From Macrostomum lignano (Eukaryota), in the NCBI GenBank assembly GCA_002269645.1, contig NIVC01000080.1:62001-126000 (forward strand): DNA of 64,000 nt, written 5' to 3'. Each line of letters starts with the position of its first letter. The first letter of the stretch is position 1. Positions 1-59,018 of the stretch are shown in pieces. A program made the translations under genes and the position numbers. The notes beneath the pieces are model-generated. The model made no database searches. It was not told the origin of the DNA and worked only from the letters and a program-made list of their open reading frames with translations.

Positions 1-3000
1 TTGCACGCTATTTGACGCTCACGGATCAACAACTCGGCTGGAAGAACGACAGCGAGCAGCTGAAAGCATTAGCTGCCGAAAACAACGACCTATTGTGCCG
101 TGAAAAAATCCTCGAATTGAACTCAACGGGCATGTTCAACAAATCCTCAGAGTCAAACAAGTATCCGAGCTTGGGTTCAACGACATCGGAATCACCCGCG
201 TCCAATCAAGCTGAAGCCCGCAAAGTAGTCTATGTCATCTTTATGATTGTCGGCATCGTTCAGGGCGCCGCTTCTGCCCCCTCTTGGTCAGTGCTATTCA
301 CAATGGTCGAGGACTCAGCCACCCCGTCTCGTTCGCCAATCTACATCGGCCTGGTCATCACTGCTCGATCAATATCACCCATGCTGGGCTATTACTTGAT
401 CGGGCAGTTTTTAGCACTGCACGAATCATTTGGCGAATCTGGTCTGCGTGAATCCGACAGCATGTGGATTGGCAACTGGTGGCTGGGGTTTCTCAGTCTC
501 GGCCTGCTTACCAGCCTGCTTGGCATTCCCATGCTGCTGTTTCCCCGCCAACTTGAAGACGCGTTCTGCTGCTCAGAAAGACCGGATAAGCAAAAAGACG
601 ATCCCTGTTATGCTGAAGACGATCCGGACGCCTCTCAACCTGAGACTCCGCTAAACGAGGCAAATATAGTGCGCCGTATGAGTCGCCACAGGTCGTGCGA
701 ATCGCAGCCGCGTGGGGCCGGGAATTGCGCAAAACTCCTTCACAGTCTTCGCGACTTGTCACTCGCCGTGAAGCGCACCATGACCAATGCGATCCTCATG
801 CTGGTCATGCTGTCCTGCGTGGTCAGTTTGCTCGGTTCAGGTCTCGAAGTGTTGTTTATTGTCAAGTACTACGAGAACTACTTTAACGTATTGCCCTCGG
901 CAGCAGGACAGTACGTTGGCATCACCTATGCGCTGCCAACCGCACTGGCAACACTAGCTGGAGGCTACTTGGTGTCGCGCCTGCAGCTTAACGTGGTTGG
1001 AATGATGCGACTCATCTGTGGTATCTTTCTGGTGACCACCGTACTGAATTCGCCAGCATTTTTTCTGGACTGTCCCTCCGAAAGGATCAATACGGACGTG
1101 TAAGATTACATATTTTCATCTCGATTCTTTGTGCTATCGATTTGTCAATGCATTTCAATGCCTTCGTTCAGAAAACACCGAACAAGATGCGAACTCAGAT
1201 ATATTCACATGCTAAAATATCAAGGTATTGTGCTGGGTGTATCCATCCAAAGTTACCAATGCATCGCTGTAGATGTGTAACGTAATCACGCTAGATTTTT
1301 CAATCATGCAGGGTACTGGTTCCCACTACCTGCACACGTAAGAATGATCCCAGGTACGTTAAAGGTAAAGTTAGTGAAATCCTCGAGTCTAGAACTTTGA
1401 TCCTATGGCTCATTTCATATATCCGTGAGTATTTATAAAAAGGCAACATTAACCGCTTCGTTGATTCGTAAATCGACATTCATTTTTGCCAACAAGTGCA
1501 AAACGGCTTTATTTCCATAAAGCTAGCTCGTAAGACCGGTAACCGCCGTCACAGCCTCACAGAAACAATGGACGGCAACGTCAGAAGCGTCTCCGACTGC
1601 GCTGCAAAGTGCAGATGCGATGCCACTCTGTTGAACAATCTGCCAGTTTGCGGAGCTGATGGAAACTTATACATGTCACCGTGTCATGCTGGGTGTACAG
1701 GGACAATGTCTGTAGCAGCTGCTAAGAACGGGACACACCAGGTACAAACATTTGTTATTATCGAAGATCTGTTTCTGCTAATCAATTTCTTTTATTAGGT
1801 GATTATTCATTCTAACTTATTTCCGATGTCAGCCTACGGAGACGGTGTTTAGCAACTGCAACTGTTTAGAACAGGCATATGTAAACTACAGTTTAACGGA
1901 CTCCGCTGAACAAGGCCTTGTCAGCAGCACTGCACTGGCAGGCAGTTGCTACGGCGTATGCGACATGGTCTACGCCTTCTCTGTGCTGAAATTCATCGCA
2001 CATTTTGTTGACGGCCTGTCGTATGTGTCATGGTTCTTACTAGTGATGAGGTGCGCATGTTGCAAAAATTTGACAATAATCACATTAGGCAATAATCAAA
2101 AGAGAAACCTTACGAATTTTTTAGAGTGACAGACTCAAAGGACGATGAGGCCATGGGTGTCGGGATTATCTCGCTGTTCTTCAGTCTTGCCGGTAACATA
2201 TTAGTAATACTTAATCGCATTGCTGAGAAATTTTCAACTAAACTATAGGAATAGAAGGCTCCATACATACAACCCTATCGATATTTTTTTACTTTATGGA
2301 TAAACTTTTGTGAAAAAAACACAGTACGAGGGTAATGCAAAAACTCATATAAAAAGTTGTCCTAAGCGTTGTCTTAAGTTTTTCTCAAGTCTCCATGACA
2401 AACATCAATGTCCCATGCCGTACGCTAGTTATTCAACGCTTCGAAATCACTATTTAAGGCTACTAAAAATACATTCATGAGACAATGTTCCTGTGCATAT
2501 AGTTTTGAAGGTAGACAATGATTACCTTAATTCTTCACGAGTGGCGAAGCCATACACCAAAACAATATACACAACCTACCATTGTTTCTCTATGGTCCGT
2601 GCATCAATGGTTGATTCAGTTAGATTGTGTATATGGTTTTGAAGGTAGACAATGAATAATTTTTCACAAGTGACTAAAAGCAAGAAGCAAGAAAGCAAGA
2701 AAACGCACCCCCATGTTAATGAGTAGTGAAATGCTTGAACCCATCGGGTACTTGAAAATTTTTTAGACTTCCGTATTGTGTGTGAGCCTATGGCTATGGC
2801 TTGGAGTTTCCCAGGAATTAATGTCCCTAAATGTTCTAAATGTTGAGAGGAACCCACTGGATTCGCCAGCGCAATTGATGTCTGGGCGCATCATTGATTG
2901 TCAGAGTTACAATTAAACTGGTTAGGAATTTTGTACTCATTTTTCTTAACAATCGCGCTCACAAACAGCAGGTTGTTGTGTCGATCGCTACTCTACTCTA

Positions 3001-3695
3001 TGCGTGTGCCTAATTGTGTGTACATTCGATGTACACCTGTTAGCTATCGATCGCAGTACAATATACGAGCGTATGATATAAGTTAGAGAGTGGAGAGTTT
3101 GAGAGCTTGAGAGTTTCGCCTACAAACTTGCAGACTGGCTGGCTTACTCATTCTACAACACAGGTGACTTGCCTACGCACAAGTACCCTTTAACAAGGAC
3201 CCGCTAGAACCTAGAACCGCAAATATTCTGGCCCGTCCTCAGCCCCTTTCTGTGTCTAAAATCGCCTAGGCTTCCGATGAAGAACAAGAATCAAATTGAA
3301 TTAAACAAAAGCACTTGAAAGCACTTGATGACCTTTCAGCCTCCATCATGGGCGGCTTCTGCGGTCGTATTTATGAATCCGCGTGCCTGGTAGCCACCAG
3401 CGGCTCAGCTGGAGAGCGCAATTGCCTACTGTACGACAGGACGCGACTTCGGATTCTGTTTAACGGCATCCCCATGCTGGCCAGGCTGCCTTACTTCGCC
3501 CTGCTGCTGGCCGCCTATCTGCTAGTTAAACGCCGCTTCGGCAACACGACCGGAAATTTTGCGGAGCAGCCGAGTGAAAATGCAGAGGAAAATTGTCAAC
3601 TGGGTAACATCAGCTCCGAATTGCCTGACAACAAATCTGAGCAGGATGACGTTGAAACCGCTGCTGTAGCTGGTGCAGAAGAAATGTACCTCTAA
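1..3695 (+). CDS. Organic anion transporting polypeptide (OATP/SLCO family), 5'-partial. Exons <1-1099, 1312-1337, 1563-1741, 1833-2050, 2125-2192, 3340-3695
   Basis: OATP motif WIGNWWLGF, several TM segments, Kazal-like loop (CAAKCRC...PVCGADGNLYMSPCHAGC), and C-terminal GRIYESACLV...RNCLLYD. All five introns are GT-AG and their phases join into one frame (2,1,0,2,1). The frame is open back to the window start. Confidence 0.9.
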
Positions 3696-5476
3696 ATTTT
3701 AGGAGAAAATCAATCACAAGGTTAATAACATCTGAGATTTGTGTCCGAACGTCGGCTTAGGGTATTTTTGACCGACTGACTTTTTAAGTAAGAAAAAAAA
3801 ACTTGGCCGCAAGTAAATGCTACTTTTTTCTATTACGAGCTATAGCTAAAAGTTTGTTTTTAAAGCAATTAGCAGTGAAGTGGCATATATTGCATTCCAA
3901 TTTTATTTTTTCTTTTATAAACCAGCTGTTCTACTCGAAGCATCTGAATATAGTCGTAGTTTCGACTGCAAAAGCACATGTAGTCACTAAGCAAAACACC
4001 CAAAACTGACTAAGATATTTCAGAAGTGGAACTAGAAATAACTCTCAGGCAAATGAATGTGAACTGATTTTGCTTTTTGATACACAGAGTTCATTGTGAT
4101 TTACTTACTTAACGATGTCCAGCAAAAATACAACAGTAGCTCGTAAACTAATCACCCAATCAAAAGCAAAAAAGCCCGCAATTTTTTTAAATAAAATGTT
4201 AAATTTTCTTAATAATATTTTTATATATTAGAAATGCATTGTATATTTATTTTCCCCACGATTATTTTTTATATCGACTGTATGACTCCTCAAGTTTCAA
4301 TCCATCAAACCATCTTCACGCCCCATGCAGCCCTGGAACGTAATGTTATTTGAAGTGAAAACTGAAATGCCATGAACTTTTTACCTTCATACGCTTGAAT
4401 ATGTTTATGCCCTCGCTCAGTTTTGAATACGCAAGTAAACTTTTAATTATTTATTCATTCATGTTAAAGCCCGTTGAGCTGCATTATGGCTTCAACTGCA
4501 AATTTGGCATTCTGTCTTATGCTCGGTAGTCATCTTTAGTCATGCGGAATTAGAAATGGGACATCCAAAGCTAAAGCCTTTTAGAATAAAGAATGGATAC
4601 ATACTAGTTATTGAGTAGTCTCTGAGATACATATTTTTAAACAACTGAGCACAGACTTCTGGGACCAATTTATGACAGCACAGGTGAACAACCAAAAAAT
4701 AAAAATCACTGGTCGCCAATAATTCATGTAAAACTGATATTCTCGGTTTTCAATACTTGAATACTGATGCAAGCAGTCACTTGGCAGATAGCTAAGTAGC
4801 AAACCAGTGAGTTTTAGATCTTCAAATGTGTTTCTGCTCAAACGAAAGGGCTACACAAAATCCCTGTCGTCCTCTAAGAATGTCCTTTGGGTGAAGACTC
4901 TCTGCACAGTCAACGGGTTCTTTCATTGACTTTCCATAATTGAAGAAGGTCCATGACTTTTGCTTGGTTTTATCCAGCTTTTTAACCACTAGTAGACTGC
5001 AGAGAGGAGCTTTGTAGAATTGAAGTTGCGTCACTATCACAAAATTTCTCTATGGCGAACACTCCTGATGGTTGATAGCCACTCTGGTTTGCAGATTTTT
5101 AACTACGCTCGTAGTAATCATGCAGTGCTTCATAAAACTGGTGGTCCCTGAAGCCTCACTGTATCTGGGCAAAGCCGCTTTCATAAATTCGTATGCTGGC
5201 TCCAAGGACAACTTGAAGCACTATTAAAGAATCAAGTTGTCCTAGGCTGGCTCTCAATCTTTTTACAGAGTCTATGGCAAAATTGATACGCCATGTTGAT
5301 GGCGACTTCAAATTTGTCTCTCAATCATGTTTTTCGCTCAGAAATTTGCTCCTATGGCCCAAACTATCTTTGTTCCGTAGGCTTTCAACTTTGAATGTTC
5401 AGTTTCTAGCTAAGCATGGCAATGGAGCTATTATGAACTACATGTACATTGCAATAGTTGTCAGTCGGCAAAACTA

Positions 5477-6769
5477 ATGAGGCTGCATGCAGTAATTGCA
5501 ATTTCAGCATTTCTAACGGGCTTCAGTGCTGGTGAGTAACTTGATCTTACAAGATTAGCTGTATATATAATTACTCATGTTTTCAGCATATGAGTCATGA
5601 CTACTCCGCGACGTTCGGTAGCAGTTAAGGTACTTTATCCAATCTGAAGTATTTGAAGTTGTACTTCATCAATCTGAATAAAATCAACGTTGGGTAAACA
5701 GGTAACGGCTTAATATAAACAGCTTAATAAGTAACTAATCAGCGATATGTACGATGTACAAGTGTACTTAGGGGCGGTGGGCAGAGCAGCTTGCACCACA
5801 GGCCCACAACCCAATTGGTTTGATTTAGTGGGCGGCTACATTCATTCGGGCTTGTGCACCAAGTACACTGGTGCTAGGGGTTGTCGTATGATTCATACCC
5901 ATGAGGTCCTACCCCCCCCCCCAAGGTTACAGAGAGTGTACATGCCTGGCGATTAGAAAGTAGGGGCTGCTGTACACCCTGTGTGAGCGTGTGTGTCAGG
6001 AATCAGGGGAATAGGCAGAATTGCCTCGACGCTGGTTGTTGGATGATGTCGTCGAAGGCGTTGCGCCGCAGGGTGCCCGCAGCCCCCTGCGAATACTTAG
6101 TTCTTCATGCACAACTGTAGGCTATGTCGTACGTACTTTGCCATTCAATCAAAAGTTTATGAAATTGGTTAATTTATCAATGAAATAATAACGCATAGTT
6201 ATTTATGTACTTTTGTATTATTGTATTTATAAGGCCTTTTAGCCGTTTGCTAATTGAATACAACAAAGTTAAGCAGAGATGACTGCATCTCATATTTGAG
6301 ATCCTATACGCAGCTGACCTTCAAGAGAGCTACATGTAGGCAAGAGTGAGCTAGTCGCTAGTGGAAAATTAATAAAGCAGAGCTCCAGATCACTCATTGT
6401 GTGATAGGGTAGCAGTTTTGGTGTAAATGCATAGTAATTTGTATCATGTACTGATCACCCATATAATGCAACTCAGGCCAAATTCAAGAAGCTCTGTTCT
6501 GCCCAGGAGAGACTATTCAGCTACGGTGTCCAAGGGGGCACCAAGTCGTGGTCAGCTACGTATTCTATGGCAGGCGCCAGAACCAGTGGCAGTGCCATCT
6601 GTACGTCAGGCATTGGTGCACGGACCCCGACGCTGTGCATAAGATCCGACGACTCTGTCAAGGCAAACGGAGCTGCCAGGCCACCGCCGACGAGAGTTTG
6701 TTGGGGACAAAGTGCCCGCCATATACGAGCTATCTGATCATCGAGTACTACTGCTTTAAACTGATGTGA
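5477..6769 (+). CDS. Small secreted SUEL/rhamnose-binding-lectin (Gal_Lectin) domain protein, 115 aa. Exons 5477-5531 and 6477-6769
   Basis: Exon 1 encodes a signal-peptide-like MRLHAVIAISAFLTGFSA followed by G|GTGAGT (phase 1). It joins CAG|GC at 6477 in frame. The domain has 8 Cys in SUEL spacing (FCPGETIQLRC...FYGR...LCQGKRSC...KCPPYTSYLIIEYYC). Confidence 0.75.
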
Positions 6770-7417
6770 ATTTCATACACTCGAATTGCAACTCTCAAAA
6801 CTTGTAATGTTATTTAAATTTCCCTAAGATACTACTGTTGGTGATGTGCTCTTTGTGATGATTCTAAAATATGCAACAATTTTTTCTGAAGCTGTATTTG
6901 ATATTGGCGTAGATATTATTGGATAATGAAATGAAGATATTAGATACTGTTAAAATAATATTTTTAAATTCATAAAAATTTATTTGATAATGGTATGAAT
7001 ACTATTTGAAATTGATATAAATATAATTGATTAAAAACTGCTCTTGCGCTTCGAGCGATGACGTACATGTAAGTTGGTTGACCTCGCCATGAAATAAGCA
7101 GGGAATTAAACTGTCAGTTCGGTTACAAAGCGCTCACCAGCCGTGACAAGATTGTCACCGTTTATCAGTCACAGAAATTTCTAACTAAAGTAGGTGCACT
7201 TCAGTACGCAAGTATCGGCACTACTCACGCCATAGGCCGAAGCCTTCGATTGGTTCAGCAGTAGACTCAAGCAAGGGGAGAGGCCCGCCCTTGCATCAAT
7301 AAATCAGCTAAGCAGGCATCGAAGGCAGGACCCGCCGCCTCTGAAGTTTTCAGGTGCAACCTACCGTTCGGTCTCAAACCAATTTGTAAGACGTAATCTT
7401 GCTACAGCAAATTCGGC

Positions 7418-7798
7418 ATGTCGGTCAACCAGATCTTGTAAGTGCCAATTTCACTAATGCCATTTTGACAGCTTATCTAGCACACAGATTGTCAGCCATA
7501 ACACGGCTGTAAAAGCTAAACTAATGCTTTTCTCATCACCCACAGTGGTCTGAGTCTGCTCATGGCAATCGCCATCGCCGGAGCAGTCGGCGGAGTCAAC
7601 AAGCGCTCCTCGTTCTCAGCCGAGCAGCCGCAGCTCTACTGCTACGAGAAGCACCCAGAAGAGGCGCGGTGCAACAAGTGCTGCGAGGAGAACTACAAGT
7701 TGTGCAAGAAGGAACTTGGCTGCGGGAAGAACGACTGGCGCTGCCAGAACCCCTGCTGGGAGTCTATGAAGTACTGCGACTACCAGTGCAAGATCTGA
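7418..7798 (+). CDS. Secreted cysteine-rich prepropeptide, 90 aa, family unassigned. Exons 7418-7437 and 7546-7798
   Basis: ATG TCG GTC AAC CAG ATC TT|gtaagt ... cacag|T GGT joins in frame. The product has a hydrophobic signal region, a KR dibasic site and a 10-Cys C-terminal domain. Exon 2 is GC3-rich. Confidence 0.8.
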
Positions 7799-8331
7799 CT
7801 GGACTGACAACTGCAAAACTGGACTTTTTAATTTAGAAGCCAAGGGTGGAGCCTGAGAGACTTGAGACAGACTAATCTGCAAAAATACTGATATACTACT
7901 TTTCTACAACTGAAACTAGCAAACAGAAAGGTACATCTTATCCTTCCCCCGCACAGCCACCCTAGTCCGCTATAGTTGACGTGGAAAACTGAGATAACCA
8001 CCTTTGTTTGTCACCCCAGCGCCGAGCTGTGCGAATTCTGGCACAGCTGTCCCAAACCTGACAATTTAAAAGCGCAGCATCGCAATATTGAATAGAGTTC
8101 TGTTGTCTCTGGCTTAATTTTTTCAACACATCAAAAACAAAACTGCAACATCTGCTGGAGCAGTGTACTGGATAAAATCTACAAAAATGACCGGTAGATC
8201 AATGGACAGTGTTTAAATCACAAAGTCCAGGAAAAATTTCAGTTTGGGTCAACATTTAGGCGAGTTTCGATATGAATGCAAATTAAAAACCGTGTGACAA
8301 GCTCACTGTAGTTCTATGAAAATTCCATGAA

Positions 8332-8465
8332 GGGGCTATAGCCTAGTGGTTAGAGCGTCTCTCGACCCACTCGGAATAATTTGTGTCCTTGAGTAAGACA
8401 CTTAACTCTGTATTGCTTCAGTTCACCCAGCTGTAAAATGGGTACCAGAATTAGCTGGGTTAATA
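8332..8465 (+). mobile_element. tRNA-derived CORE-SINE fragment
   Basis: A-box-like head GGGGCTATAGCCTAGTGGTTAGAGCG, then TGTGTCCTTGAGTAAGACACTTAACTCT...TGCTTCAGTTCACCCAGCTGTAAAATGGGTACC, which closely resembles the MIR/CORE consensus. No clear B box. Confidence 0.7.
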
Positions 8466-9484
8466 GTACATTAACACCCATGCTTTAAGGGCGTTAATGG
8501 GAAAATCAGAGGGCGCCGTTATTATGCCAAATGTCTATGGCACAATGTAACGATATATACCGATTTTTACCGATATATACCTATTTTTTTCGGCAGCAAT
8601 TGCGTAAGCTGAAGCCGCTACTACGCGGCTTCAGCTTACGCAATTGCTGCCGAAAAAAATCGGTACATGTCATTATTGTACCCTTTTGACTTCCCTTGTC
8701 TATGGCCCAGACATAGTGCGGATGCTGAGTATGAAATGCGATTGTTGCCGGAATGCGCTTTGAAAGGGTTGTAGAGATAATCAATCGTCTATGGCAAATT
8801 TAGTTGCTCTCTAAATGAAAGGGTTGTAGAGATAATTAATCGTTTATGGCAAATTTAAAGGACAGTGAAGACAGCTAGCCTGGCTGCCATGAGTTAATTC
8901 TCAAGTTGATTTTGAGCTTGAATTAATTCTCCTATTCGGAGTGCAAATAGGAAAAGTAGCTATGATTCGCTACGCAAACATTCCTGGCGGAGAAATATGT
9001 GGACTCTCCACGGACGAGTTGGCTTTTGTCACCCGAGAGTCGAGCACGCGCTACGTTCTGGAGATGGACAACCTGGATGCGTCGTCCAGTTCCAACGGGC
9101 TGCCTGAGCTAGGTAGCGAAGATCTGGAAATGTTGGACCGACTTGAGAGTGACTCAGTGCCGAAATCGACCGAGACGCAACGGAAGCTTCACGTGCTCTG
9201 TTCCACAACTGCACATTCAACTTTTACGGAAAGTAAAACAATTGATTCGATCGGTTTGTTCTTAAGAACTTTTTGTGACTATGAAACACTTTCGCCGTGT
9301 TGCTATTGTTGTTCCTTGTTTTGATAGCCAAATACATTCGTCTGAAATCCGGCAACAATCGAAAAAAGCCGACAAACAATTAAATTGTTACCGCAAGTAT
9401 GAATGCCGGAAACCATAGACAAAAGGGAACAATAATAGTAATACCCATGCTTTGCGGGCGTTAATGAGAAATCCTCGGGCGCCT
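8461..9484. mobile_element. Putative non-autonomous DNA element, possibly a Crypton/DUF3504-like remnant
   Basis: Imperfect direct repeats at 8461-8517 and 9433-9484, and four GTCTATGG/CCATAGAC motifs inside (a fifth at 9621). An internal ORF fragment LPELGSEDLEMLDRLESDSVPKSTETQ resembles, by eye, the N-terminus of DUF3504 tyrosine-recombinase-like proteins. Confidence 0.35.
8583..8660. repeat. Perfect 36-bp inverted repeat with 6-nt loop
   Basis: ATTTTTTTCGGCAGCAATTGCGTAAGCTGAAGCCGC-tactac-GCGGCTTCAGCTTACGCAATTGCTGCCGAAAAAAAT; the arms are exact reverse complements. Confidence 0.97.
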
Positions 9485-29449: not shown

Positions 29450-30112
29450 CTTTAAAATTTCTATTGTCTCTTCTGTTTCCTTTCTTCTCTCTCATCCCTC
29501 GTCTCTCGTCTCTCGTCTCTCTTCTCTTCTCTCGTATCTTCCCTCATCTCTCTTCTCTTTCATCTCTCTTATCTCATCTCTTCCCTATTCTTTTCTCTCT
29601 CTTCTCCTCTCTCCTTTCTACATTTCATTTTCTCTCTGCTCTCTTCTCTCCTCTCTACTCTTTCATTTTCTCTCTCCTCCCCTCTCTCCTCTCTCCCATC
29701 TTCTTTTGTATATTCCCTCTCATCTTTCTTCTCTATCATATCTTTTATCTCATATCTTCCCTCTTCTTTTCTCTCTCCTCTCCTCTCTACCCCTCTTCTC
29801 TTGTCTCTTCCTTGTCTTCTCTATTCTTTTCTCTCTTCTCTTAACTCTCTCCTCTACTCTCTCATCTCTCCTCTCTATTCTTTCCTCTCTCTCTCTCCTC
29901 TCTCCCCTCTTCTCTCGTCTCTTCCCTCACCTCTTTCCTCTCTCTCTTTCCTCTCTCTCTTTCCTCTCATCTCTTTTCTTGTATTATCTCTTCTCTCTCC
30001 CCTCATCGCTCGTCTTTTCCCTCACCTCTCTTCTTTTTTGTCCGCTCTTTTATCTCTCCTTTCTCTTCTTTTATCTTTTCTTTCTTATCTCTTCTCGTTA
30101 CTCTTTGCTCTG

Positions 30113-30187
<75 letters not shown>

Positions 30188-30950
30188 CCCATCTCTCTTC
30201 TCTCTACTCTCTCCCCTCTTCATTCTCCTATTTCCTCTTCTCTCTCCATCTCTCTTCTCTTCTCTAGTCTCTGTAATTTTTTCTCTCTTATCTCTCCTCT
30301 GTTCTCTCTACTCTCCTATCTCTTTCTGTTCATCTGTTCTGCTCTCTCATTTGTCATCTTTACTCTCTTATACGTTCTCACTTATCTCCTCTGTACTCTT
30401 CTCTTTCACCTCTTCTGACTCTTCTCTTTCCTTAATCCTTTCTTTTCTCTTCGCTCTTCTCTATACTCTCTCTCCTCTATTATCTTCTCTCGTCTCTCTC
30501 TACACTCTCCTATCACCTTTTTCTCTCATCTCTTCTTTCATCTGTCTCATCTCTACAATCTCATCTCTTTCCTCTCTCCTCCTCTTCCCTTTACTCTCTC
30601 ATCTCTCCTTTCTCCCCTCTTCTTTCTCTTCTTTCACCACTCTCTTATCTCTATCTCTTCTCTTCTCACTCCTCTATCCCCCTCTTATCTCCTCTCTTCT
30701 CTATCCTTTCTACTCTTTCCTCTCTAATCTTTCCTCTCCTCTTGACCCTCTGTCATCTTCTTTCTGCTCTCTCATCTCTACTCTCTTCTCAATCTTCTCT
30801 ACTTTCTTCTCTCATCAATCCTCTGTCTCATCTTTCCTCTCTTCTCACCTTTACTCTTTCCTCTCCTTCTTTTCTCCCCTCCTCTCGCTTCTTCCTCCCT
30901 TCTTCTCTGCTCTCTCCTTACCACTTTTCCTTTTCACTCTCATCTGGCCC
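29450..30950 (+). repeat. About 1.5-kb degenerate CT-rich polypyrimidine tract with a perfect (CT)n core near 30119-30181
   Basis: Almost exclusively C/T on the plus strand. It produces the spurious Leu/Ser ORFs in the track. Confidence 0.97.
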
Positions 30951-32696: not shown

Positions 32697-35600
32697 ATGG
32701 CTCGACGTGGCACCAGCGCATTGAAGAAGAGCAGAGATGCCAAGAAGAAGCGTCAGCAAGAGAGTGCCGTTCAGCGAGAAGAGCGCCTGATGAGACTCCG
32801 ACAGCAGGAGGCTGAGCGAAGAGCAAGTGAAACCGATGCTCAGCGAGAAGAGCGCCTGACGAGACTCCGACAGCAGGAGGCTGAGCAAAGAGCAAGTGAA
32901 ACCGATGCTCAGCGAGAAGAGCGCCTGACGAGACTCCGACAGCAGGAGGCTGAGCAAAGAGCAAGTGAAACCGATGCTCAGCGAGAAGAGCGCCTGACGA
33001 GACTCCGACAGGAGAATGCTGAGCAAAGAGCAACTGAAACAGACGCTCAGCGTGAAGAGCGTAGATCTGCAGACAGAATTCGTGCAGAGAAGCGACGCGC
33101 TTCAGAAACCGAAGATGAACGAAGAGCTCGAATCGAAGCCGAACAAATTCGCCGTCGAGGAGTGTCGGTTAGCAGGTAGGATGACGTTTTAATCTGAGCT
33201 ATTATATATTTCTGTGATCATTCTTAACACACTGTGACCGTTAAATGATAATAATCAATGTGCCCGTTGTGTTCATGTTTATTCTTTTATGGGTATTTTG
33301 TATTGTAGTTGTTGTTTAATTGGTACATAGGCTTATACTGAAAAACTAGAGCCCATTTCTAAGTCTTTTAACGCAATTTTTCTCATATTTTTGAGATAGG
33401 CTTCCAGGAATTATACATATGAGATAAGTATTTTAGATAGAATCTACAATTAAAATAAATTCGGTTTCTAATAATATTAAGTTTTGAAGCCTGTTTCTAA
33501 GAATATTATATGTGTGAGTCGGCTTCGAAGAATCTTAAATCTATGAGATAGGTATTTAATATAACAATATTAATTTATGAGAATCGGTTAAGCATTTTTT
33601 ACTGATGAAAATGGTTTTCGAAGAATCTTTGTTTATAATGCAATTACATTTTAGACTGGTTTGTAAGAATGTAGAATGGCATAAAAATATTCTTCACTAT
33701 TCTAAGAACCGCCAAATGAAGTTGTGTATAATCCAAATATACTAAATCTTTATTTCCTCTATTCCAGGTTTGATAGTAGTGAGTTGGCCACACCGTCTGT
33801 GGTACCTTTTGATGCGTTGCGCATAATTCGAATTCCTGGTGATGGGAACTGTTTTTTTCATGCAGTCTGTGACCAGTTGCAGGGCACTCCACTTGAGACC
33901 GATGCAGCATCTTTAAGACACGAGCTGACGAGCCGTGTAGTGCAGATTATGCCAGAATTGATTGAACAAGGCTTTGTTTTGCCAGAAAATGCTGATTTCA
34001 TTGTTGATTCATCTTTTTCTGAAGGCACATATGTGCCTGATGAAGTTGTTCCGCTTTTAAGCCGTTGTTTTAATGTTGATCTGGTAATTTATCAAGAAAA
34101 TGGCAGTGTATTGCAGTACTGTATGTCCCCTTTGCAGCCACCGATTGCAATCGTCCGAATTCTTTTGCGTCATGAGCATTATGAGTCATTGCGATTTGCT
34201 AATCCGATTTCAGTTTCTGAGCCCATTGCAGATGCAGAGGAGCCAAGATTAACTCAGCAGAGTGCAGGTCATTTTGGCGCAAGACCTGCTCAAGAGAGGT
34301 AGGTCATTGGTGTGACTGGTCATCATAATTTATTTGTCATCGAAATCAAGTTTTAAGTTTTATTCTAATATTTTTTTGTAAAATGAAAGATTAACCGGGA
34401 AAACTATTTGCCATTAATCCTTCCTAATCCTAATCCTTCCAATCACAGGCCAGAACGGATTATCAGGCCTGAAGCGCCAGCCCATAACTGTGGCCCAATG
34501 GACAGAGCATGCGACCAATGCGGTGCATTACTTTGGTGCTCTGAGACGAGGAATTTCTGCTGCGCCAAAGGCAAGGTAAAGCTACCCAGCCGCACCGTGC
34601 CTCAAGTGCTGGCGGATCTGTACATGGGGCAGCACAGAATGAGTGCTGAGTTCCTGACCAACATTAGAAGTTACAACTCGGCGCTGCACCTGACATCGCT
34701 GGGTGCCAAACTGCGGTTGGTGCCAGGCTGGTGTCCCAGCTTCATCATCAGCGGCCAGTTGCATCACAACACGGCGTCGCTGTTTGCAGAAGATTCAGCT
34801 GAGCCCCATGGCTGGCAAGTGTATTTCAATGATCGCGAACTTGAAAGCCGCCAGAGTCTCAGCCAGAAGGTGAAGCCGGAGCTACTGGAGCTGCTGCAGA
34901 CGCTGCTTCACGAGTGTAACGGCTATGTCCGCAGCCTGAGGGCAGTCGCTCATCGAATCAGTCAAGATCCGGAGTTGGGAGATGCGCGAATCGTGATTCA
35001 CCCTGACCGTCGACCATCTGGGGAACACATTCGGTATGTCTGCAAGACACTTTAATAACATATTTTGCGTAATAAAGTATCTAATTATCCAATTTGTACA
35101 GACTCTGTATCCCACAAAATCCGTTTGAAATCAGGCGCTACAACTTGCCTACGGCGAACGAGGTCGGTATCCTGATCGTTGAGGACAATGAGAACACACC
35201 GGCCAGTCGGGACGTCGTGATTCAGCTGCGTGGAGGCGGTTCCCAGCGAATCAGTGAGACGCACCGCTCATACGACCCGCTGGAGTATGTGCTGCTGTTC
35301 CCGAATGGCGAAGATGGCTGGCACCCGGAGTTGCTGATGAGTAATGGCAAGAAATTAACGCCCATGAAATACTATGCGAGCGAAATCATGGTGCGAGCGG
35401 GCCAGTTCAGTGTGCTGCACTATGGCCGAAGATTATTTCAGCAGTACTTGGTGGACATGTGTGCCAAGATTGAGGCAGAGAGGCTGCTGTATTTGCGGAC
35501 CCATCAGCAGGACCTGCGCAGCGAGACGTATAGCGGTCTGCGGGACGCTTTGTTTGCGGCTGATGGCAGGTCTACCGACAGAGATCCGAGTGACATAGGC

Positions 35601-37805
35601 AAGCCCGCGCATGTGCTTCTGTCTTCGAGCTTCGTTGGCGGGCCAAGGTACCTGATGGAGAGGCTACAAGACGCTATGACCTATGTTCACAAGTTCGGTA
35701 AGCCGGACCTGTTTGTCACCGCAACGTGCAATCCGAAATGGCCGGAGATCAGCGCCCAGCTGCTGCCTGGACAGCGGGCAGAAGACCGGCCCGACATTGT
35801 TAGCCGAGTCTTTGAAATGAAGAAGAAAGCTCTGCTGGCCCAGTTGACCAAGCGCTATGGGAAAGAGGCCGCTCACGTTTGCTCACTGGAGTACCAGAAG
35901 CGTGGTGAGTAAAAATTCTGACTTGCAAGAATCAAAGTTTTAAGATTTATTGAAATTTAGATTTACAAAGGTTTGTGATTTTTTCTACTTTTTTGACGCT
36001 CCAGGTCTTCCTCATGTGCACTTTCTGCTGTGGCTCGTGAGCGGTCAGCGAGTGACTCCGGACCGATACGATGACATCGTGTCTGCCGAGATTCCGGACC
36101 CAGAGCAGCAGCCCGTGCTGTATGAGCTGGTGAAGACGCACATGATCCATGGCCCCTGCGGCAAGGACAATCCAGCGTGCCCTTGCATGGAGAATGGCGA
36201 ATGCAGCAAGGGCTTTCCTAAAGAATTCCAGCAGGTGACGCTGACCAGCGATACAGGCTACCCACTGTACCGCAGACTGTCGCCTGAGATGGGCGGATTT
36301 ACAGTGGACAAGCTGTTTAAAGGCCGGAGCATTCGCATGGACAACAGGGGAGTTCAAACGCTAATATATTGCTCAGTTGTGCTTTGCTGCTTTTGTTTCT
36401 GAAAGTTAATGATATTATTTTTTCATTAAAACAGGTGGGTCGTTCCGTACAGCCCTGACCTGTTGCTCCAGTTTGTATGCCACTTGAACGTCGAAGTTTG
36501 CGCCACTGTGAAGTCGGTCAAGTACGTGATCAAGTACCTGCTAAAGGGTGGCGACATGGCGACGTTCAAAGTCGATGCCAATAGGAATCCAACTGAACCG
36601 AGAGAGCAGGCAGTGGGTGACCAGCAGCCGACGCAAAGGACAGGAAATGAGCCACGTGATGAGATCAAAGAGTACCTGTCCGCGCGCTACATTGGTCCAA
36701 TGGAAGCCGTGAATACCATCTTGGGCTTTGAAGTAATTCGCATTTTAATTATTATTGGCTCATTTTAACCAGAGCTGTGAACACCTCGTCATAGTATAAA
36801 TTGAATTTCCATTGAAACTTAAAGGCTGTATATTTCCTTCCACTTTCTGATCAGGTGCACAACAGATTTCCGGCGGTCATCCGACTCTGCGTTCACAAGT
36901 CGGAAGAGCAGCTCGTGTATTTCAACGAGGGGACCGCAAGAGCAAAAGTGAGAACGCCGAAGGATTCGACGTTGACGGCATTTTTCAAGCTGTGCCGTAT
37001 TGACGAATTTGCTGGGTCCTTGCTCTACACGGAGGTGCCGTCCTACTTTGTGTGGCACTCCAGCGAAAGAGAGTGGCGGCGGGCCAAGCAGGGTGTGCGA
37101 GTCGATGGCCATCCGGGTGTAGTGCGGAACAAAAACGTTGCACGCATGTACACGGTGAGTCCAAGAGCAGGTGATTTATTTTATGTTCGAATGCTCCTTT
37201 TGAATGCTAGGGGACCGACTAGCTTCGAGGCGCTGCAGACCGTGGACGGCGTTGTGCATCCGAGCGCCAAGGCTGCTTGCATGGCACTTGGCCTGCTGCA
37301 GCGAGATGACCACTGGCGGCGGTGTCTAGCTGAGGCCGTTCAGTCAAGAATGCCAAGAGCCCTGAGACATCTTCTGGCCGTAATTCTCATATGGGGTGAG
37401 CCTGAGGATGGCAGCGACCTCTGGTGCAGTTTTGCCGAGGATCTCAGCGAGGACCTGCGGTTTCACCACCGAGACTTGAGCACCGAGGAGATTACTGACC
37501 TGGCGCTGCGTGAGCTTCAGAGCATGCTGATCTCCATGGGCGGGAGAAGCCTGCCAGAGTACGGCCTGCCTGCGGCCTCCGTGACACCTCAAGATGGACC
37601 AATGCAGTTTGATACGGTTGAGCAAGCACTGATTACTGAGGCGCGCTTACCAATGCTGACAGATGAGCAGAAAGCGGTGTACGAGTCCGTGACTCAGAAT
37701 CTTGTGGACGGCGCCAGCGGCTTGCACTTCCTGGACGCACCTGCTGGCACTGGCAAGACCTTCCTGCTGGAGGTTCTGCTAGCCTTCGTGCGCAGCCGGG
37801 GTGAA
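32697..37805 (+). pseudogene. Helitron RepHel (STPR repeats, OTU, Zn finger, Rep, start of PIF1 helicase). Exons 32697-33175, 33768-34298, 34449-35033, 35135-35904, 36005-36347, 36435-36732, 36855-~37805
   Basis: OTU PGDGNCFFHAV...HYESL; Zn finger CDQCGALLW...CCAKGKV; Rep motifs PDLFVTATCNPKW, EYQKRGLPHVH, DNRWVVPY, KYVIKYLLKG; Walker A DAPAGTGKT. The exons join into 1319 codons. The fifth donor is GG rather than GT and helicase motifs after Walker A are absent. Confidence 0.9.
32772..33060 (+). repeat. 69-bp coding tandem repeat (4+ copies) encoding 23-aa STPR-like units ETDAQREERLTRLRQQEAEQRAS
   Basis: CAGCGAGAAGAGCG(CCTGA) recurs at 32772, 32841, 32910 and 32979, with a diverged copy at 33048. 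Confidence 0.92.
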
Positions 37806-38663
37806 GTCAGACAGACAGACACACAGAGTTTTGATTTTTATATGTAGAGATAGTAATAATTAGATTTGCCTTTGTTGCTAGTCTGATCTATTAGAAATCT
37901 AGATCCCAATTTAATTGAAATCTAGACCTACATCTATTTGAGATCTAGATCTTGATCTATCAGAGATTTATCCTAATCTATCAATGACCTATACTGATCT
38001 ATCTTGAAGATAGATCAAGAAAAGAAATTCTTATTTAAGAAAAATATAAAAATAATTTAATGCCACAAACTAGGAGATTGCCATTTAGGCCTAGGTCTTA
38101 TTGTTTAAAGGCTTATATTCTTTAGACCTTTACCACTAACACTAATAAGCTATAGGCCTATTGATAGGCCCAGTTATCATAACCTAGCTAGCTATTGCAT
38201 ACCTAGCACCTATAGCTAGCTAGTTATATCATTCAAGCAGAGCAATATTGTCTTAATATTGCCCTAAGATTTTTAAGCCTTATAGACTTATTGTTCTATA
38301 TAACTTGGTACCCTATTGTAGCCAAGGTCTAAACTGCACTAGATGACCCCTGCCCTTTTGCACTTGCATATACTTTTCAATAGAAACCTAGGGCCTAGCT
38401 TGGCTTGTCTAGGGCTGCTATAGTTTGTTGTTATTGTTGCCATATCATGAATGTTAGGCAAAGTTTTGGCACTTTTAGTACTAGAAATAGGAAATGCAAA
38501 TTAAGTGTGTATTAGAAAATGCTCTAGCCTTTAGCTTTTATCTATTGCTCTATTTATCACTCAATCTATTGCTTTATCCACTATTCTATATATCATTACT
38601 TTTACTGCCCTATCTATTGCTCTATCTACCACTTTAGGTACTGCTTTATTTATTTCTCTATCC

Positions 38664-43772: not shown

Positions 43773-45161
43773 ATGGCCGATATCAGCAGCAGTGGCTCCG
43801 AGACCTACTCTAGCAGTAGTGGCAGCGACAGCAGCAGCAGCCGCAGCAGTAGCAGTCTTGGTCGCCACCGTCACCGCAGCAGGCAGCGCCGGCGTGATCG
43901 AAGTGGCAGCAGTCGCAACCAACACCGACAGCATCCGCAGCAGCACGTTGATGACATCAATGAAACTGCAGCCATTGGAGCGTCAGTTCGCGATGCCGCT
44001 TCTGCATCTGTTGTACTCCCCATGTCGGTCATTGCGCCAATGCCGTCTTCGCTTGAGGCTGGTCAGTCTTCGTCTGCTGAGACCACTGCTGCCACCGGTA
44101 CCTCTGTTTCCACAGCAACGGCTTGGCCTGAGTCATTAATTATTAATTGCTGTTCCTCTTCAGCCGGTTGCCAACAGATGCAGCTGCTGGAGCAGCAGTC
44201 AAAGCAGCCAACTGTAACGCCCTCTGTAGCCATTGCTGGTACTAGCGGCGGCTGCGCCGGCGGCAGCTTCCCGACTGGCCGCCCGAAATATCCTCTACCG
44301 GATGATTCGGAATACTCCAGCTACGAGTCGCTACTAGGCCAGGGCGGGGGCGGCCGCGCCTCTAAGCCGTTTTGCCGGATCTGCCATCTGCCAGGCGACG
44401 AGGCCAGCAGCGGTGGCGCTGCCGGCGGCGCGGCCAGCGTCAGCGGCGCGAACAACCGGCTGCTGCTGTCGCCATGCCGCTGCTCCGGCACCCTGCAGCA
44501 CGTGCACCCGGCCTGCCTAGCCAAATGGATTGAAGCCTCGGCCAGGATCCGCCGCTCCCTCGATCCGGCCGCTGAAGCCGAACGTCGCCGTCGGCATCGA
44601 GGCGGTCGCCGACGAAACGGCAGGTCGCCGCCGCGATGCGAGTTGTGTAATTATGAGTACAGGCGGCGGGCGAAGTTCAGCTTGGCCGCTAACGGCGGCT
44701 GGAGAATGCCTCGGGTGTCGCGAGGAGACCGAGTGCTGCATCTCATCTTCTTGCTCTGTCTGCTAGTCATGACCGCTTGCGCTGTGATCACAGTCATGTG
44801 CTTTGTGCGCGATCGGGACCGGCCTGTTCAGCAGCAGCAGCTGGTGACTTCTGCTTCTTCCTCTTCTATTGCTTCGTCTGCTTCTGCGTCGCCTGGCGCG
44901 GCCTCGGAAGCCGCTTCAAAGCAGCAACCTCTGCCGCCGCAGCATCCGCACCAACCGCCGCCGACTCCGCTGGTTCTGACTGGCTACGAAGCCTTGACTC
45001 TTGTGTCCGGCATTCTATTTTTCTTGGCATTCTTCACGGCTATGAGTGTTCAAATTAAAAGCAGGCACACTGTGTACAAACTGATTGTGAAGTGCTATCG
45101 AATGAATATCACGTATTCGTTTTTGCCCTACGAGCGGTCTAGAGATTCTCAGTTGGCGTAG
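43773..45161 (+). CDS. MARCH-family membrane-associated RING-CH E3 ubiquitin ligase, single coding exon, 462 aa
   Basis: RING-CH C4HC3 (CRICH...[21 protein letters not shown]...RCELC) followed by two hydrophobic TM segments. The start is GCCATGG with an in-frame upstream stop at 43731. Confidence 0.92.
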
Positions 45162-49465: not shown

Positions 49466-50283
49466 GTGGGAAGGGCGCTCTCCCTTGGGGAGGACACTGT
49501 CCCTGAGGAGTGGCGCTGTCCTTGGGGAAGGACACTCTCCTTGGGTAGGACACTGTCCCTGAGGAATGGCGCTGTCCTTGGGGAAGGACACTGTCCCTGA
49601 GGAGTGGCGCTGTCCTTGGGGAAGGACACTCTCCTTGGGTAGGACACTGTCCCTGAGGAATGGCGCTGTCCTTGGGGAAGGACACTGTCCCTGAGGAATG
49701 ACGCTTTCTTTGGGGGAAGGACACTGTCCCTGAAGAATGGCGCTGTCTTTGGGTAAGGACTGTCATTGAGGAGGGCGCTGTCTTTGGGTATAAGGACACT
49801 GTGAGGAAGGGCGCTGTCGTTGGGGAAGGACGCTGTCCCTGAGGAAGGGCGCTGTCGTTGGGGAAGGACGCTGTCCCTGAAGAATGGCGCTGTCTTTGGG
49901 GAAGGACACTGTCCCTGAAGAATGGCGCTGTCTTTGGGGAAGGACACTGTCCCTGAGGAATGGCGCTGTCTTTGGGTAAGGACACTGTCCCTGAGGAATG
50001 GCGCTGCCTTTGGGGGAAGGACACTGTCCCTGAGGAAGGGCGCTGTCTTTGGGTAAGGACACTGTCCCTGAGGAATGGCGCTGTCTTTGGGGGAAGGACA
50101 CTGTCCCTGAGGAATGGCGCTGTCTTTGGGTAAGGACACTGTCCCTGAGGAATGGCGCTGTCTTTGGGGGAAGGACACTGTCCCTGAGGAAGGGCGCTGT
50201 CTTTGGGGAAGGACACTGTCCCTGAAGAATGGCGCTGTCTTTGGGGAAGGACACTGTCCCTGAGGAAGGGCGCTGTCCTTGGG
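49466..50283. repeat. About 38-bp minisatellite (AGGACACTGTCCCTGAGGAATGGCGCTGTCTTTGGGGA), roughly 20 copies
   Basis: Tandem units seen directly. Each unit is a diverged dimer of about 19-bp halves. Confidence 0.96.
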
Positions 50284-51848: not shown

Positions 51849-52969
51849 ATGGCCGCAGTGTCAGGATGCTCTTCTATGTTGCTTCTTCTGCTCCTAGTGG
51901 CGGCTGTTGTTGTCCCGCATCAGCCAGTTTCGGCGCAGCTGCAGAACCCTGACTACAGTGGAAAAGCTTCAGTCCGCCTGAGCACGCTGTACGACAAGAA
52001 AGACGAGCCCGTGGACAAATCCTGGCCCCCGCAGGGGGTGCGGAGTTCGCGCAAATCGACGTCACCGTCATGGGTAAAAAAGTGAGCGGTGCTGCGGTGA
52101 ACATGGAGCCGCAGATAAACCAGATGAAGCCGAGGAAGCTGCGCAAAGTGCTGGACGGCAAGCTCGATCCGAACTGGGTGTCTATCGATCGGCCGCGTCA
52201 GGCCGACGCCGCTGCGGTGGGCAATGACACCGCGTCATCGACTGTGTCTTCCCAGGAGCATCTGCAGCCGCCGCAGTCGGCGCCAGATTCAAAACTCCTG
52301 GCTCACCTAGAGAGAATTCACCTGCGAACGATGAGAGACGAGCTTGGCCAAATTGTCACATTCGACGACAAGACTGTGCGCCTGTTCAAGTCCTGGCTAA
52401 TGAAGCAAGCCGCCTGTCCGGTTGAGTACCTCTGGGAGGACCTGGGCGCGCTGTTTTGGCCGCGTTGGATCCGCCGCGGTGTCTGCAGTTCGCTGAGCAG
52501 CTGCAGCTGGCCACCCGGAATGAAGTGTCGCAAGAGCGGCCAGAAGGAGCTGAAAGTCCTGCGCTGGGTCTGCAACGACAAGGCCTCGATGGACGACGCC
52601 CAGGATCCAAGGCGCGGCTCAAGGCGTCGATCTGCTCACCGCGGCGTCAGCCGGGAAGAGCGCCGGCGTCGACGCCAGCGTCGACGAGGAAAGAGGCGCC
52701 AACGACGACCGCGCCGAGATGGACGAGCAGCGGCGGCCACTGGGGCCGGTTCAGCTGCCTCGTCGTCGAGACGCGGATCCGCCTCGGCGGGCTCTCGTCG
52801 CCTGCCTGAAGGCTGGCAGGCGCGGAAGTCACGCCGACGCGAGGGCCTGCGGGAGAGGCGACGCCGCAGGCTGATTATGCGCCTGTCCAAAACTGTTGGC
52901 GACTATTTCTGCTACTGGCGGCAGATTAACTACTACGTCACTGATCGGTGCGCCTGCATGTGCTCCTGA
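51849..52969 (+). CDS. Noggin-like (nlg-type) secreted cystine-knot protein, with a -1 frameshift at about 52034-52038
   Basis: Signal peptide from GCCATGG at 51849. Noggin motifs: KLRKVLDGKLDPNWVS, WLMKQAACPVEYLWEDLGALFWPRWIRRGVC, SCSWPPGMKC, VLRWVC and CYWRQINYYVTDRCACMC, giving all 9 C-terminal Cys. There is a 112-aa insert between C5 and C6. Confidence 0.9.
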
Positions 52970-55094: not shown

Positions 55095-55400
55095 GAGAGA
55101 TGAGAGATGAGAGTTGAGAGGAGAGGAGAGAAGAGGAGAGGAGAGGAGAGGAGTGGAGAGGAGAGGAGAGGAGAGGAGAAGAAAGGAGAGGAGAGGAGAG
55201 GAGAAGAAAGGAGAGGAGAGGAGAAGAGAGGAGAGGAGAGGAGAGGAGAGGAGAGGAGAGGAGAGAAGAGGAGAGGAGTGGAGAGGAGAGGAGAGGAGAA
55301 GAAAGGAGTGGAGAGGAGAGGATAGGAGAGGAGTGGAGAGAAGAGGAGAGGGAGGAGAGAGGAAAGAAAATAGAAGGGAAAGGAGATTAGAGAGAAGAGA
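55095..55400 (+). repeat. (AGAGG)n pentanucleotide microsatellite
   Basis: GAGGAGAGGAGAG... runs with GAGAA/GAGTG variants. Confidence 0.96.
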
Positions 55401-57600: not shown

Positions 57601-58080
57601 GAGGTTTGTGATAGAGAAGGTTGTTTTGGAGAAGGTTGTGATGGAGAGGGTGGTTGTGGAGAAGGTTGTGATGGAGAGGGTTGTGATGGAGAGGGTTGTG
57701 ATGGAGAGGGTTGTGATGGAGAGGGTTGTGATGGAGAGGGTTGTGATGGAGAGAGTTGTGATGGAGAGGGTTGTGATGGAGAGGGTTGTGATGAAGAGGG
57801 TTGTGATGGAGAGGGTTGTGATGGAGAATGTTGTGATGGAGAGGGTTGTGATGGCGAGGGTTGTGATGGAGAATGTTGTGATGGAGAGGGTTGTGATGGA
57901 GAGGGTTGTGATGGCGAAGGTTGTGATGGAGAGGGTTGTGATGGAGAGGGTTGTGATGGAGAGGGTTGTGATGGAGAGGGTTGTGATGGAGAGGGTTGTG
58001 ATGGAGAGGGTTGTGATGGAGAGGGTTGTGATGGAGAGGGTTGTGATGGAGAGGGTTGTGATGGAGAGGGTTGTGATGGA
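57601..58080. repeat. 15-bp minisatellite (GAGAGGGTTGTGATG)n, about 32 copies
   Basis: Near-perfect tandem units. Confidence 0.97.
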
Positions 58081-59018
58081 AAGGGGGGAAATAATTGAAG
58101 GTGGAGTAGAAAGAGGAAATCATGCAGTGGAGGTGAGCGATTACAAAAAACGGGTTAAGATTAGAGACATAAATAAGTATATGGACTATGGTTGAAGCAG
58201 CTCAACTAAAATAATATCCTGTCCAACTCCACTGCTCCGTCTGGTTCAGTATGCTGCTGTGATCAGTAGCGAGTTTATAGTTTAAAATAGTTCGGTATGC
58301 TAACAGACATACTTCTGTCTGTAACAGATTCAAGTAGAACTGCTGGACCAACAGATCAGCCCAGCAGGCAATTTCTTCAGTTTGCCGTTTTAAAACGGCA
58401 GCCCCAATCCAGCCCAGCGCAGGAATCAGCTTCCTATAACCGCAGCGATGGAAACCGCGAGATAAGAGCCCGGGCCTTCCTCACTACAAGAGCCTCCTGC
58501 GCGGCGAATTCCGGCCTGACGTTCGGAAGGCAGCAGCCGAGCTTCGCATCGGCGATCGTAAACTTTCTGGAATCGGCATTCTTTTCCCGGAGGCGAGCCC
58601 AGCTTCATCTATCATCAATCAGAGAGTCGCATACTGCAGATGGAGACTAACCCGCCCTTTGTTTCATGCAAGCTCCATGCTGGCTCATCCCGATAAAATG
58701 TTGTTGCAGACAAAACTTACAAACGTCTGGCAGTTCAAGTTCCGTGTTCAAGTTTCAATATGACAAATAGCTGACCGAATAGAACACTGCCCTCTGTGTG
58801 GGTTGTTCTTGCATTCTCTTCTAGCATTCCTGAACTATTGTTGTTTTTCTAAGCTGAAGTATTGCATTATCCTCATTTGATATATGGATCTGACAACTGG
58901 GATTGGAAGTTTAGTTTTCATCTATTGGAAACAAAACCTATTGAAAGATCGCCATGTCAAAGTTTGCAGAGAAATTGTCTCACCAGACAGAAAAATGGCC
59001 TTCAAACCGAGACACAGA

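Follow-up and report, generated by a model that had tools for sequence, protein, structure and literature searches.

Positions 7418-7798 of a 64,000-nt stretch of contig NIVC01000080.1 (assembly GCA_002269645.1) from Macrostomum lignano (the window, whose base 1 is contig base 62001) are a stand-alone, spliced and transcribed two-exon gene (Mlig024245; PAA91690.1). It encodes a protein of 90 amino acids with an N-terminal signal-like segment and a domain of ten cysteines. With a probability of roughly 0.55 we take the product to be a secreted, lineage-restricted mini-protein of three helices stapled by disulfides, the action of which consists in binding a target outside the cell. M. lignano is a free-living flatworm, the genome of which is partly duplicated (PMC5730564).

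The gene lies on the forward strand. Exon 1 (7418-7437; ATGTCGGTCAACCAGATCTT) begins with the ATG at 7418 and encodes MSVNQI plus the first two bases of the codon for F7, which is the start of the predicted signal peptide. It is followed by a phase 2 intron of 108 nt (7438-7545), which has the donor GTAAGT from 7438, a CTAAT branch-like site, a pyrimidine tract and CACAG at its end, and by exon 2 (7546-7798; 253 nt), which terminates in the stop codon TGA, read directly from the sequence at 7796-7798. The first part of exon 2 (7546-7606) encodes the remaining signal peptide, whose hydrophobic core extends to about A20/G23, then a short linker and the dibasic pair K26-R27 (7601-7606); the part thereafter (7607-7795) encodes a Cys-rich domain of 63 residues with 10 cysteines and three predicted helices. 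The spliced coding sequence of 273 nt translates into 90 residues, identical to the product given in the original prediction for this DNA, which had been made without database searches. The cysteine framework after KR, C-x9-C-x2-CC-x6-C-x5-C-x6-C-x3-C-x6-C-x3-C (spacing 9,2,0,6,5,6,3,6,3), was recomputed and is the one quoted there. On the 5′ side an in-frame TAA at 7394 closes the reading frame, and the 305 nt before the start (7113-7417) contain no further ATG. The unspliced frame is interrupted by stops within the intron, the longest unspliced open reading frame (ORF) being one of 78 residues from M13 (7562). An AATAAAT at 7298-7304 (forward strand), about 115 nt 5′ of the ATG, is TATA-like and may be the core promoter, and 7799-8287 (forward strand) is the probable 3′ untranslated region, with ATTAAA at 8282 as the sole canonical-type poly(A) signal nearby.

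An exact-sequence look-up returned the 90-residue product as PAA91690.1, PAA55050.1 and PAA55054.1 (locus tags BOX15_Mlig024245g2 and g3; UniProt/UniRef A0A267E0I3), all named ‘hypothetical protein’ in GenBank and encoded on three contigs, NIVC01000080.1 among them. The 78-residue unspliced ORF has no record in the same look-up, as expected if the annotated model is the spliced one. The GenBank genes of the Mlig_3_7 assembly were derived from transcripts alone, namely by StringTie/TACO from RNA-seq reads and a de novo transcriptome; gene boundaries were set by spliced-leader and poly(A) reads, ORFs were called by TransDecoder, and novel transcripts below 0.5 reads per kilobase per million (RPKM) were discarded (PMC5730564). 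The junction 7437^7546 is used in the deposited model, whose product is the spliced translation, and because the annotation was built solely from RNA-seq transcripts the junction has RNA support. Both the gene model and the transcript with this junction, as they had been predicted from the letters, are thus borne out by the transcript-only annotation.

As a gene it is not a new discovery. It is already public, though without a family, domain or function in its record; nobody has described it. The gene identifiers and three short peptide strings occur in no paper of the searchable literature, and the literature on secreted, Cys-rich or single-cell data of M. lignano contains nothing on it. A conclusion of low expression from the absence of Logan transcript contigs was dropped; the Noggin and RINGv genes of the window (see below) are likewise found on NCBI contigs only.

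The composition argues strongly for a real coding sequence. The G+C content at third codon positions (GC3) is 0.846 versus 0.46 and 0.41 at first and second positions (GC1 and GC2), and the overall G+C content amounts to 0.57 in the coding sequence, 0.41 in the intron and 0.43-0.46 in the flanks. In codon-usage log-odds the claimed frame scores 0.50, the best of the six, with the other five at 0.27 or below. Four stop-free stretches of the window reach at least 10 cysteines in 52 residues; the 10-Cys gene is the only non-repetitive one, the other three belonging to a tandem array with 15-nt units or to GC-rich frames of other genes, antisense or off-frame. No paralogue of the peptide was found within the window by tBLASTn. 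By analogy with gland products the very high GC3 may reflect high expression, a link that is not established at the level of this species.

Residues 6-24 of the precursor are uncharged and hydrophobic, with a Kyte-Doolittle mean over nine residues of up to 2.8 between residues 9 and 20; the domain that follows is hydrophilic, and its cysteines are even in number. Candidate sites for signal peptidase with small residues at -3/-1 are AIA/GA, AGA/VG and VGG/V (after A18, A20 and G23). The segment thus shows what characterizes signal peptides, a hydrophobic core at least 7-15 residues long and small neutral residues at -3/-1, as the original prediction had it. The single K26-R27 is located 4-9 residues past the likely signal peptidase site; the prepropeptide reading of the original prediction has this one pair as its basis, and one KR is not specific. 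The domain after KR has 63 residues and a mass of 7.57 kDa and contains 10 Cys, 5 Tyr and 2 Trp. Its 8 Lys and 2 Arg are balanced by 8 Glu and 2 Asp (net charge about −0.5 at pH 7; isoelectric point (pI) 6.5), its grand average of hydropathy (GRAVY) is −1.18, and it has neither a cationic nor an amphipathic face.

AlphaFold2, run without an alignment on the mature domain, predicted helices at mature residues 8-15, 20-37 and 44-62 with a mean predicted local distance difference test (pLDDT) of 77 and a predicted template modeling score (pTM) of 0.55; a pLDDT of 71-77 was reached by three of its five models. In a run with the full precursor the same three helices were obtained, residues 1-33 being unstructured (pLDDT below 50-60). 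Projected on a helical wheel, C22, C25, C26 and C33 of helix 2 are at 140-240 degrees and C46, C50, C57 and C61 of helix 3 at 200-260 degrees, so that in the predicted fold each of the two helices carries a cysteine stripe. C33 and C46 lie equally far from the loop, as do C22 and C57, which leaves over C12 in helix 1 and C39 in the loop. The original prediction had compared the terminal CX3C-x6-CX3C with helical-hairpin disulfide peptides. This comparison is contradicted by the fold predictions: in both AlphaFold models C46-C50 and C57-C61 are on one continuous helix (44-62), and the spacer of 6 residues is too short for a turn.

From these properties the following mode of action is proposed. 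The first 18-23 residues would act as signal peptide for the endoplasmic reticulum, in which the other 63-70 residues would fold to a compact three-helix bundle. Its core would consist of five disulfides and aromatic residues; helices 2 and 3 would face each other with their Cys stripes, and helix 1 and the loop would be tied in by C12 and C39. A secretory cell of gland type would then release a highly charged, overall neutral, protease-resistant mini-protein, which outside the cell would bind a macromolecular target (a receptor, a channel, an enzyme or a matrix component) without disrupting membranes. As to the role of such a binder, a rough division gives equal room to a water-borne or contact signal and to a seminal-fluid or other gland secretion, either of which is conceivable rather than probable; a defensive or predatory toxin-like binder appears somewhat less plausible, and a role of another kind is unlikely.

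The 10-Cys domain belongs to no detectable characterised family and, as far as sequence comparison reaches, is lineage-restricted. Neither Pfam nor, with phmmer, the sequences of the PDB gave a match at E values up to 10, and Foldseek with the predicted fold returned nothing significant (best E 8.1 in the PDB and 1.4 in BFVD). That the framework fits no named family had been supposed in the original prediction and is in line with all these searches. An exhaustive phmmer search of 1.84 billion cluster representatives yielded two matches. One of them (P0001) is UniProt A0A1I8G1Y5, a chimeric M. lignano model containing exon 2 of the 10-Cys gene. The other (P0002) is the only match outside M. lignano and borderline, a metagenomic protein of 147 residues with two Cys-rich repeats, encoded at 616-1059 of a contig of 1.5 kb (JGI 3300028647, contig Ga0272412_1068694; locus L004). 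It shares with the flatworm peptide a module of 34 residues, C-x6-C-x5-GCG-x-N-x2-RC-x-N-x2-W-x5/6-C, and the similarity amounts to a library-wide phmmer E of 6.6e-5, a pairwise BLASTP E of 8e-9 and a pairwise hhalign probability of 94.7%; three cysteines of the flatworm peptide (C22, C25 and C50) have no Cys counterpart in P0002. The contig carries closely packed ORFs, one of them with a lipoprotein-like signal. P0002 belongs to no family, and further scans found no relatives of it. The match may reflect true remote homology or a compositional coincidence.

A scan of bacterial and archaeal genomes found no relative. In a metagenome scan there was a single match of 13 residues, on a high-GC bacterial contig and outside any ORF, which was discarded as chance. 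A word-indexed protein search with the 90-residue product and with an alignment of three sequences returned no candidate; this negative is uninformative, because the identical stretch and longer proteins containing it are present in that collection, and negatives of this search for the window's proteins in general deserve no trust.

For comparison of the genomic copies, the segment 63418-75798 of NIVC01000080.1 (L006; its first base is window position 1418) was set against NIVC01002815.1 (L007) and NIVC01002816.1 (L008). The latter two are 99.8% identical to each other, and both differ by 4-9% from the window copy in the flanks. Between the window and L007 the intergenic region 6770-7417 shows 38 mismatches and 4 indels in 659 columns, most of them distal (about 30 mismatches plus indels in 6800-7112; 7 mismatches in 7113-7417). 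In exon 1 there are two changes (7423 G>C and 7435 C>T), both synonymous, in the intron there is one in 108 positions, in exon 2 none in 253, and in 7799-8100 there are 2 mismatches and 1 indel in 304 columns. The probability that two random changes in the coding sequence are both synonymous is 0.037 (51.7 synonymous and 218.3 non-synonymous sites), which suggests purifying selection. The 90-residue protein is thus identical in at least two diverged genomic copies.

Several points tell against the binding mini-protein. The sign of purifying selection has a thin basis of two substitutions, and local low divergence or gene conversion may contribute to it, because the intron and the 3′ flank are also nearly identical. 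The n-region of the predicted signal peptide is without a basic residue. Both AlphaFold predictions are single-sequence predictions of moderate confidence, and two of the five models of the mature domain are poor (pLDDT 50 and 41). We infer the binding of a target from composition and predicted fold at the level of the class. The gene identifiers are absent from the text supplements of Grudniewska 2018, Brand 2020 and a 2026 ploidy paper, and the corresponding files of Weber 2018, a prostate screen, contain neither the peptide nor the coding-sequence strings; all these supplements are possibly incomplete or use other identifiers, which makes both negatives weak evidence.

By its build the 10-Cys peptide is of the kind of small secreted disulfide-rich mini-proteins, with no sequence relationship and no detectable structural relationship to a curated family. 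Invertebrate genomes commonly contain orphan genes for secreted Cys-rich proteins. Closest in build are the pheromones of the ciliate Euplotes and the attractin of Aplysia, which are secreted, all-alpha proteins of 40-100 residues with 3-5 disulfides and a highly charged surface and act as soluble ligands. This comparison is an analogy of build and likely action only; the Cys frameworks differ, the taxa are unrelated, and neither the sequence nor Foldseek revealed a similarity of the flatworm peptide to any PDB entry. The alpha-hairpinins, the CS-alpha/alpha peptides and the twin-CX3C small Tims likewise have CX3C motifs on helices and disulfides that staple antiparallel helices. These helical-hairpin and small Tim families have one CX3C per helix, a loop of at least 10 residues and 4 Cys in total, whereas the flatworm peptide has both C-terminal CX3C on one predicted helix, a spacer of 6 residues, 10 Cys and three helices. 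The alpha-hairpinin/CS-alpha-alpha assignment was rejected for want of two antiparallel helices that carry one CX3C each and are joined by two cross-helix disulfides, and the small Tims (zf-Tim10_DDP; CX3C-x11-16-CX3C, no signal peptide) on account of the spacer of 6, the signal peptide and the lack of a Pfam match. With the insulin/relaxin-like peptides the protein has in common three helices, a CC doublet, secretion and a possible dibasic processing; it lacks the B-chain C-x11-C, the A-chain CC-x3/4-C-x8-C and an excisable C-peptide between dibasic sites and matches neither PF00049 of Pfam nor a PDB entry, and this family was also rejected.

The next gene upstream encodes a SUEL-type lectin (5477-6769, forward strand). 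In the reconstructed splice model it consists of exon 1 (5477-5531), an intron (5532-6476) and exon 2 (6477-6769), and its product of 115 residues with a signal peptide is PAA91689.1 (gene called in L006). The SUEL domain is full-length (Pfam PF02140; E 1.1e-15; 58.1 bits with a cut-off of 31.4; profile positions 1-80 of 80). The gene is built like the 10-Cys gene, of a short signal-peptide exon, an intron and one main exon, and its stop at 6769 is 649 bp 5′ of the 10-Cys ATG on the same strand. The original prediction had seen in this neighbourhood a hint of a secretory-cell micro-cluster. The secreted neighbour in the same orientation is real; it is a plain SUEL lectin, and no secretory cluster is demonstrated. 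The two genes bear different transcript-cluster names with no evidence of co-transcription, and the ‘micro-cluster’ is two adjacent secreted genes, whose joint presence in the two genome copies is what a duplication would be expected to leave. Relative to the second copy, exon 2 of the SUEL gene differs at 6605, 6613 and 6766, all three changes being non-synonymous (V>L, H>Q and M>I), the opposite of what is found in the 10-Cys gene.

Two public models from the older ML2 assembly, which span window positions 3315-7798, join these genes. A0A1I8G1Y5 comprises the tail of an upstream OATP transporter, a truncated SUEL domain and the 10-Cys exon 2 in frame, and in A0A1I8J989 the SUEL exon is joined in frame to the 10-Cys exon 2. 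Through these fused models the proteins of 90 and 115 residues come to be in one 90% cluster.

The alternatives to a secreted target-binding mini-protein begin with these models, in both of which a SUEL exon is spliced in frame to the acceptor at 7546, as if the 10-Cys exon were no gene of its own and provided the C-terminus of a longer protein, a SUEL lectin or an OATP-SUEL fusion. However, one of the models takes in the tail of a transporter with 12 transmembrane segments (Pfam) and cuts SUEL at profile position 60 of 80 via the weak donor TT/GTTGGG; the other uses the donor AT/GTGAAT at 6766, and in the L007 copy the GT of this donor is lost by G>A. A fusion would place the hydrophobic signal-like segment internally, and the transcript-based annotation has two genes, each with its own ATG, signal-peptide exon and stop. 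Because of the weak or non-conserved donors, the truncated or buried elements and the conflict with the transcript-based annotation, the fused models are regarded as prediction artefacts, and a longer fusion protein as extremely improbable. The lectin could also be read as a partner: SUEL/rhamnose-binding lectins are pattern-recognition molecules in several animals, and a membrane-active antimicrobial peptide of mucosal immunity might be deployed together with the secreted lectin from the adjoining gene on the same strand. A neutral, very polar surface without an amphipathic cationic face argues against a lytic peptide, as do the net charge of about −0.5, the pI of 6.5 and the GRAVY of −1.18, and the antimicrobial-like character suggested in the original prediction is therefore disfavoured. 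Moreover, the all-alpha prediction is neither of the CS-alpha-beta nor of the beta-defensin type, and the transcript-cluster names of the two genes differ; cationic antimicrobial peptides of the defensin/macin type were rejected on charge, predicted fold and the lack of Pfam and PDB matches. We hold an antimicrobial function to be quite unlikely. Even less credit is given to a transcribed but functionally unimportant young orphan ORF. It would agree with the lack of a homologue outside M. lignano and with there being just two substitutions from which to judge constraint, but 10 Cys, even in number and in phase with the helices, are not expected of a random or very young ORF, and neither are a proper signal peptide, a canonical intron and a GC3 of 0.85.

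Among the functional alternatives, a neuro-endocrine prohormone, which would be stored in dense-core vesicles and cleaved by a PC1/3- or PC2-type convertase after K26-R27 to release a receptor-acting peptide of 63 residues from S28, is unlikely on balance; a classical prohormone is possible, not favoured. The KR directly after the signal region points in this direction, and in size and in their disulfide-stabilised helical build large invertebrate peptide hormones are similar. Yet the pro-segment would be merely about 4-9 residues long, there are no further dibasic sites separating peptides (the KK at mature 34-35 is inside helix 2), an amidation signal at the C-terminus is lacking, insulin, CHH/ITP and other hormone families of Pfam gave no match at E up to 10, and a single KR is common by chance in a protein with 16% Lys plus Arg. 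Slightly more doubtful is that the protein is the founding member of an undescribed fold family, a five-disulfide three-helix bundle with the core GCG-x-N-x2-RC-x-N, which in Macrostomum would be a pheromone- or seminal-fluid-type signalling or mate-manipulating ligand; if this were true, P0002 would point to an older unrecognised Cys-rich domain beyond flatworms or to horizontal transfer. It is improbable that the protein is a toxin-like peptide for defence or predation, which would block an ion channel or a receptor in competitors, predators or prey, although the gene product is small, secreted, disulfide-dense, lineage-specific and single-domain and without homologues, as is the case for fast-evolving effector genes. 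A very strong codon bias is typical of abundantly expressed gland products, and the GC3 of 0.85 would fit. But toxin genes usually form families, and there is no paralogue in the window and no diverged one among the annotated proteins; the protein is identical between the duplicated copies, with no sign of diversifying selection. M. lignano is a diatom feeder, and to our knowledge a venom apparatus has not been described for it.

The remainder of the window contains the following features. The gene of an OATP/SLCO organic-anion transporter is present with its 3′ exons at 12-3695 (Pfam OATP, E 2.3e-51) and ends about 1.8 kb upstream of the SUEL gene. Downstream of the 10-Cys gene, 8330-8460 has a tRNA-like head (GGGGCTATAGCCTAGTGGTTAGAGCG...) and then a conserved-looking core, reminiscent of a tRNA-derived short interspersed nuclear element; ARAGORN found no tRNA and Rfam nothing in this segment, and the Rfam and tRNA scans of the whole window were likewise negative. 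An insertion of about 880 bp in the window copy (8547-9425) has in L007 an empty site, at which ...GGCACAAT is directly joined to AATAGTAAT...; it is bounded by a short ACAAT repeat, has a 47-nt palindrome (94% complementary) at 8572-8671 and probably represents a non-autonomous mobile element. A run of ORFs at 33724-37847, the frame of which is interrupted between the ORFs, is like a Helitron remnant, with Helitron_like_N at 35094-35909 (Pfam, E 3.4e-46) and the start of a PIF1 helicase at 36855-37844 (Pfam).

Two single-exon genes, a RING-variant gene (RINGv, MARCH-like; 43773-45161) and a Noggin homologue (52070-52969), have products with exact matches on NIVC01000080.1. The Noggin protein is identically encoded on NIVC01005188.1, which illustrates the duplicated assembly. 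Tandem arrays are present at 29467-30918, 32771-33061, 49469-50283, 55116-55359, 57601-58085, 59002-59907 and 62519-63303; one is a TC-rich tract, about 1.45 kb long and strongly GC-skewed, and others have units of 69, 38, 5, 15, 93 and 20 nt. These arrays yield long spurious ORFs in several frames.

As matters stand, M. lignano has many uncharacterised lineage-restricted genes, and the 10-Cys gene is one of them. The practical results are that its gene model is right and the older UniProt models with fused genes are wrong, and that neither the antimicrobial nor the helical-hairpin label fits. Stable helical scaffolds of 7-8 kDa are of interest for protein engineering. If the protein is a functional ligand, the disulfide-rich secreted mini-proteins would gain a cysteine framework, and probably also a small fold, that is new among them, from a flatworm that is genetically tractable by transgenesis and RNA interference and in which such effectors are almost unstudied.

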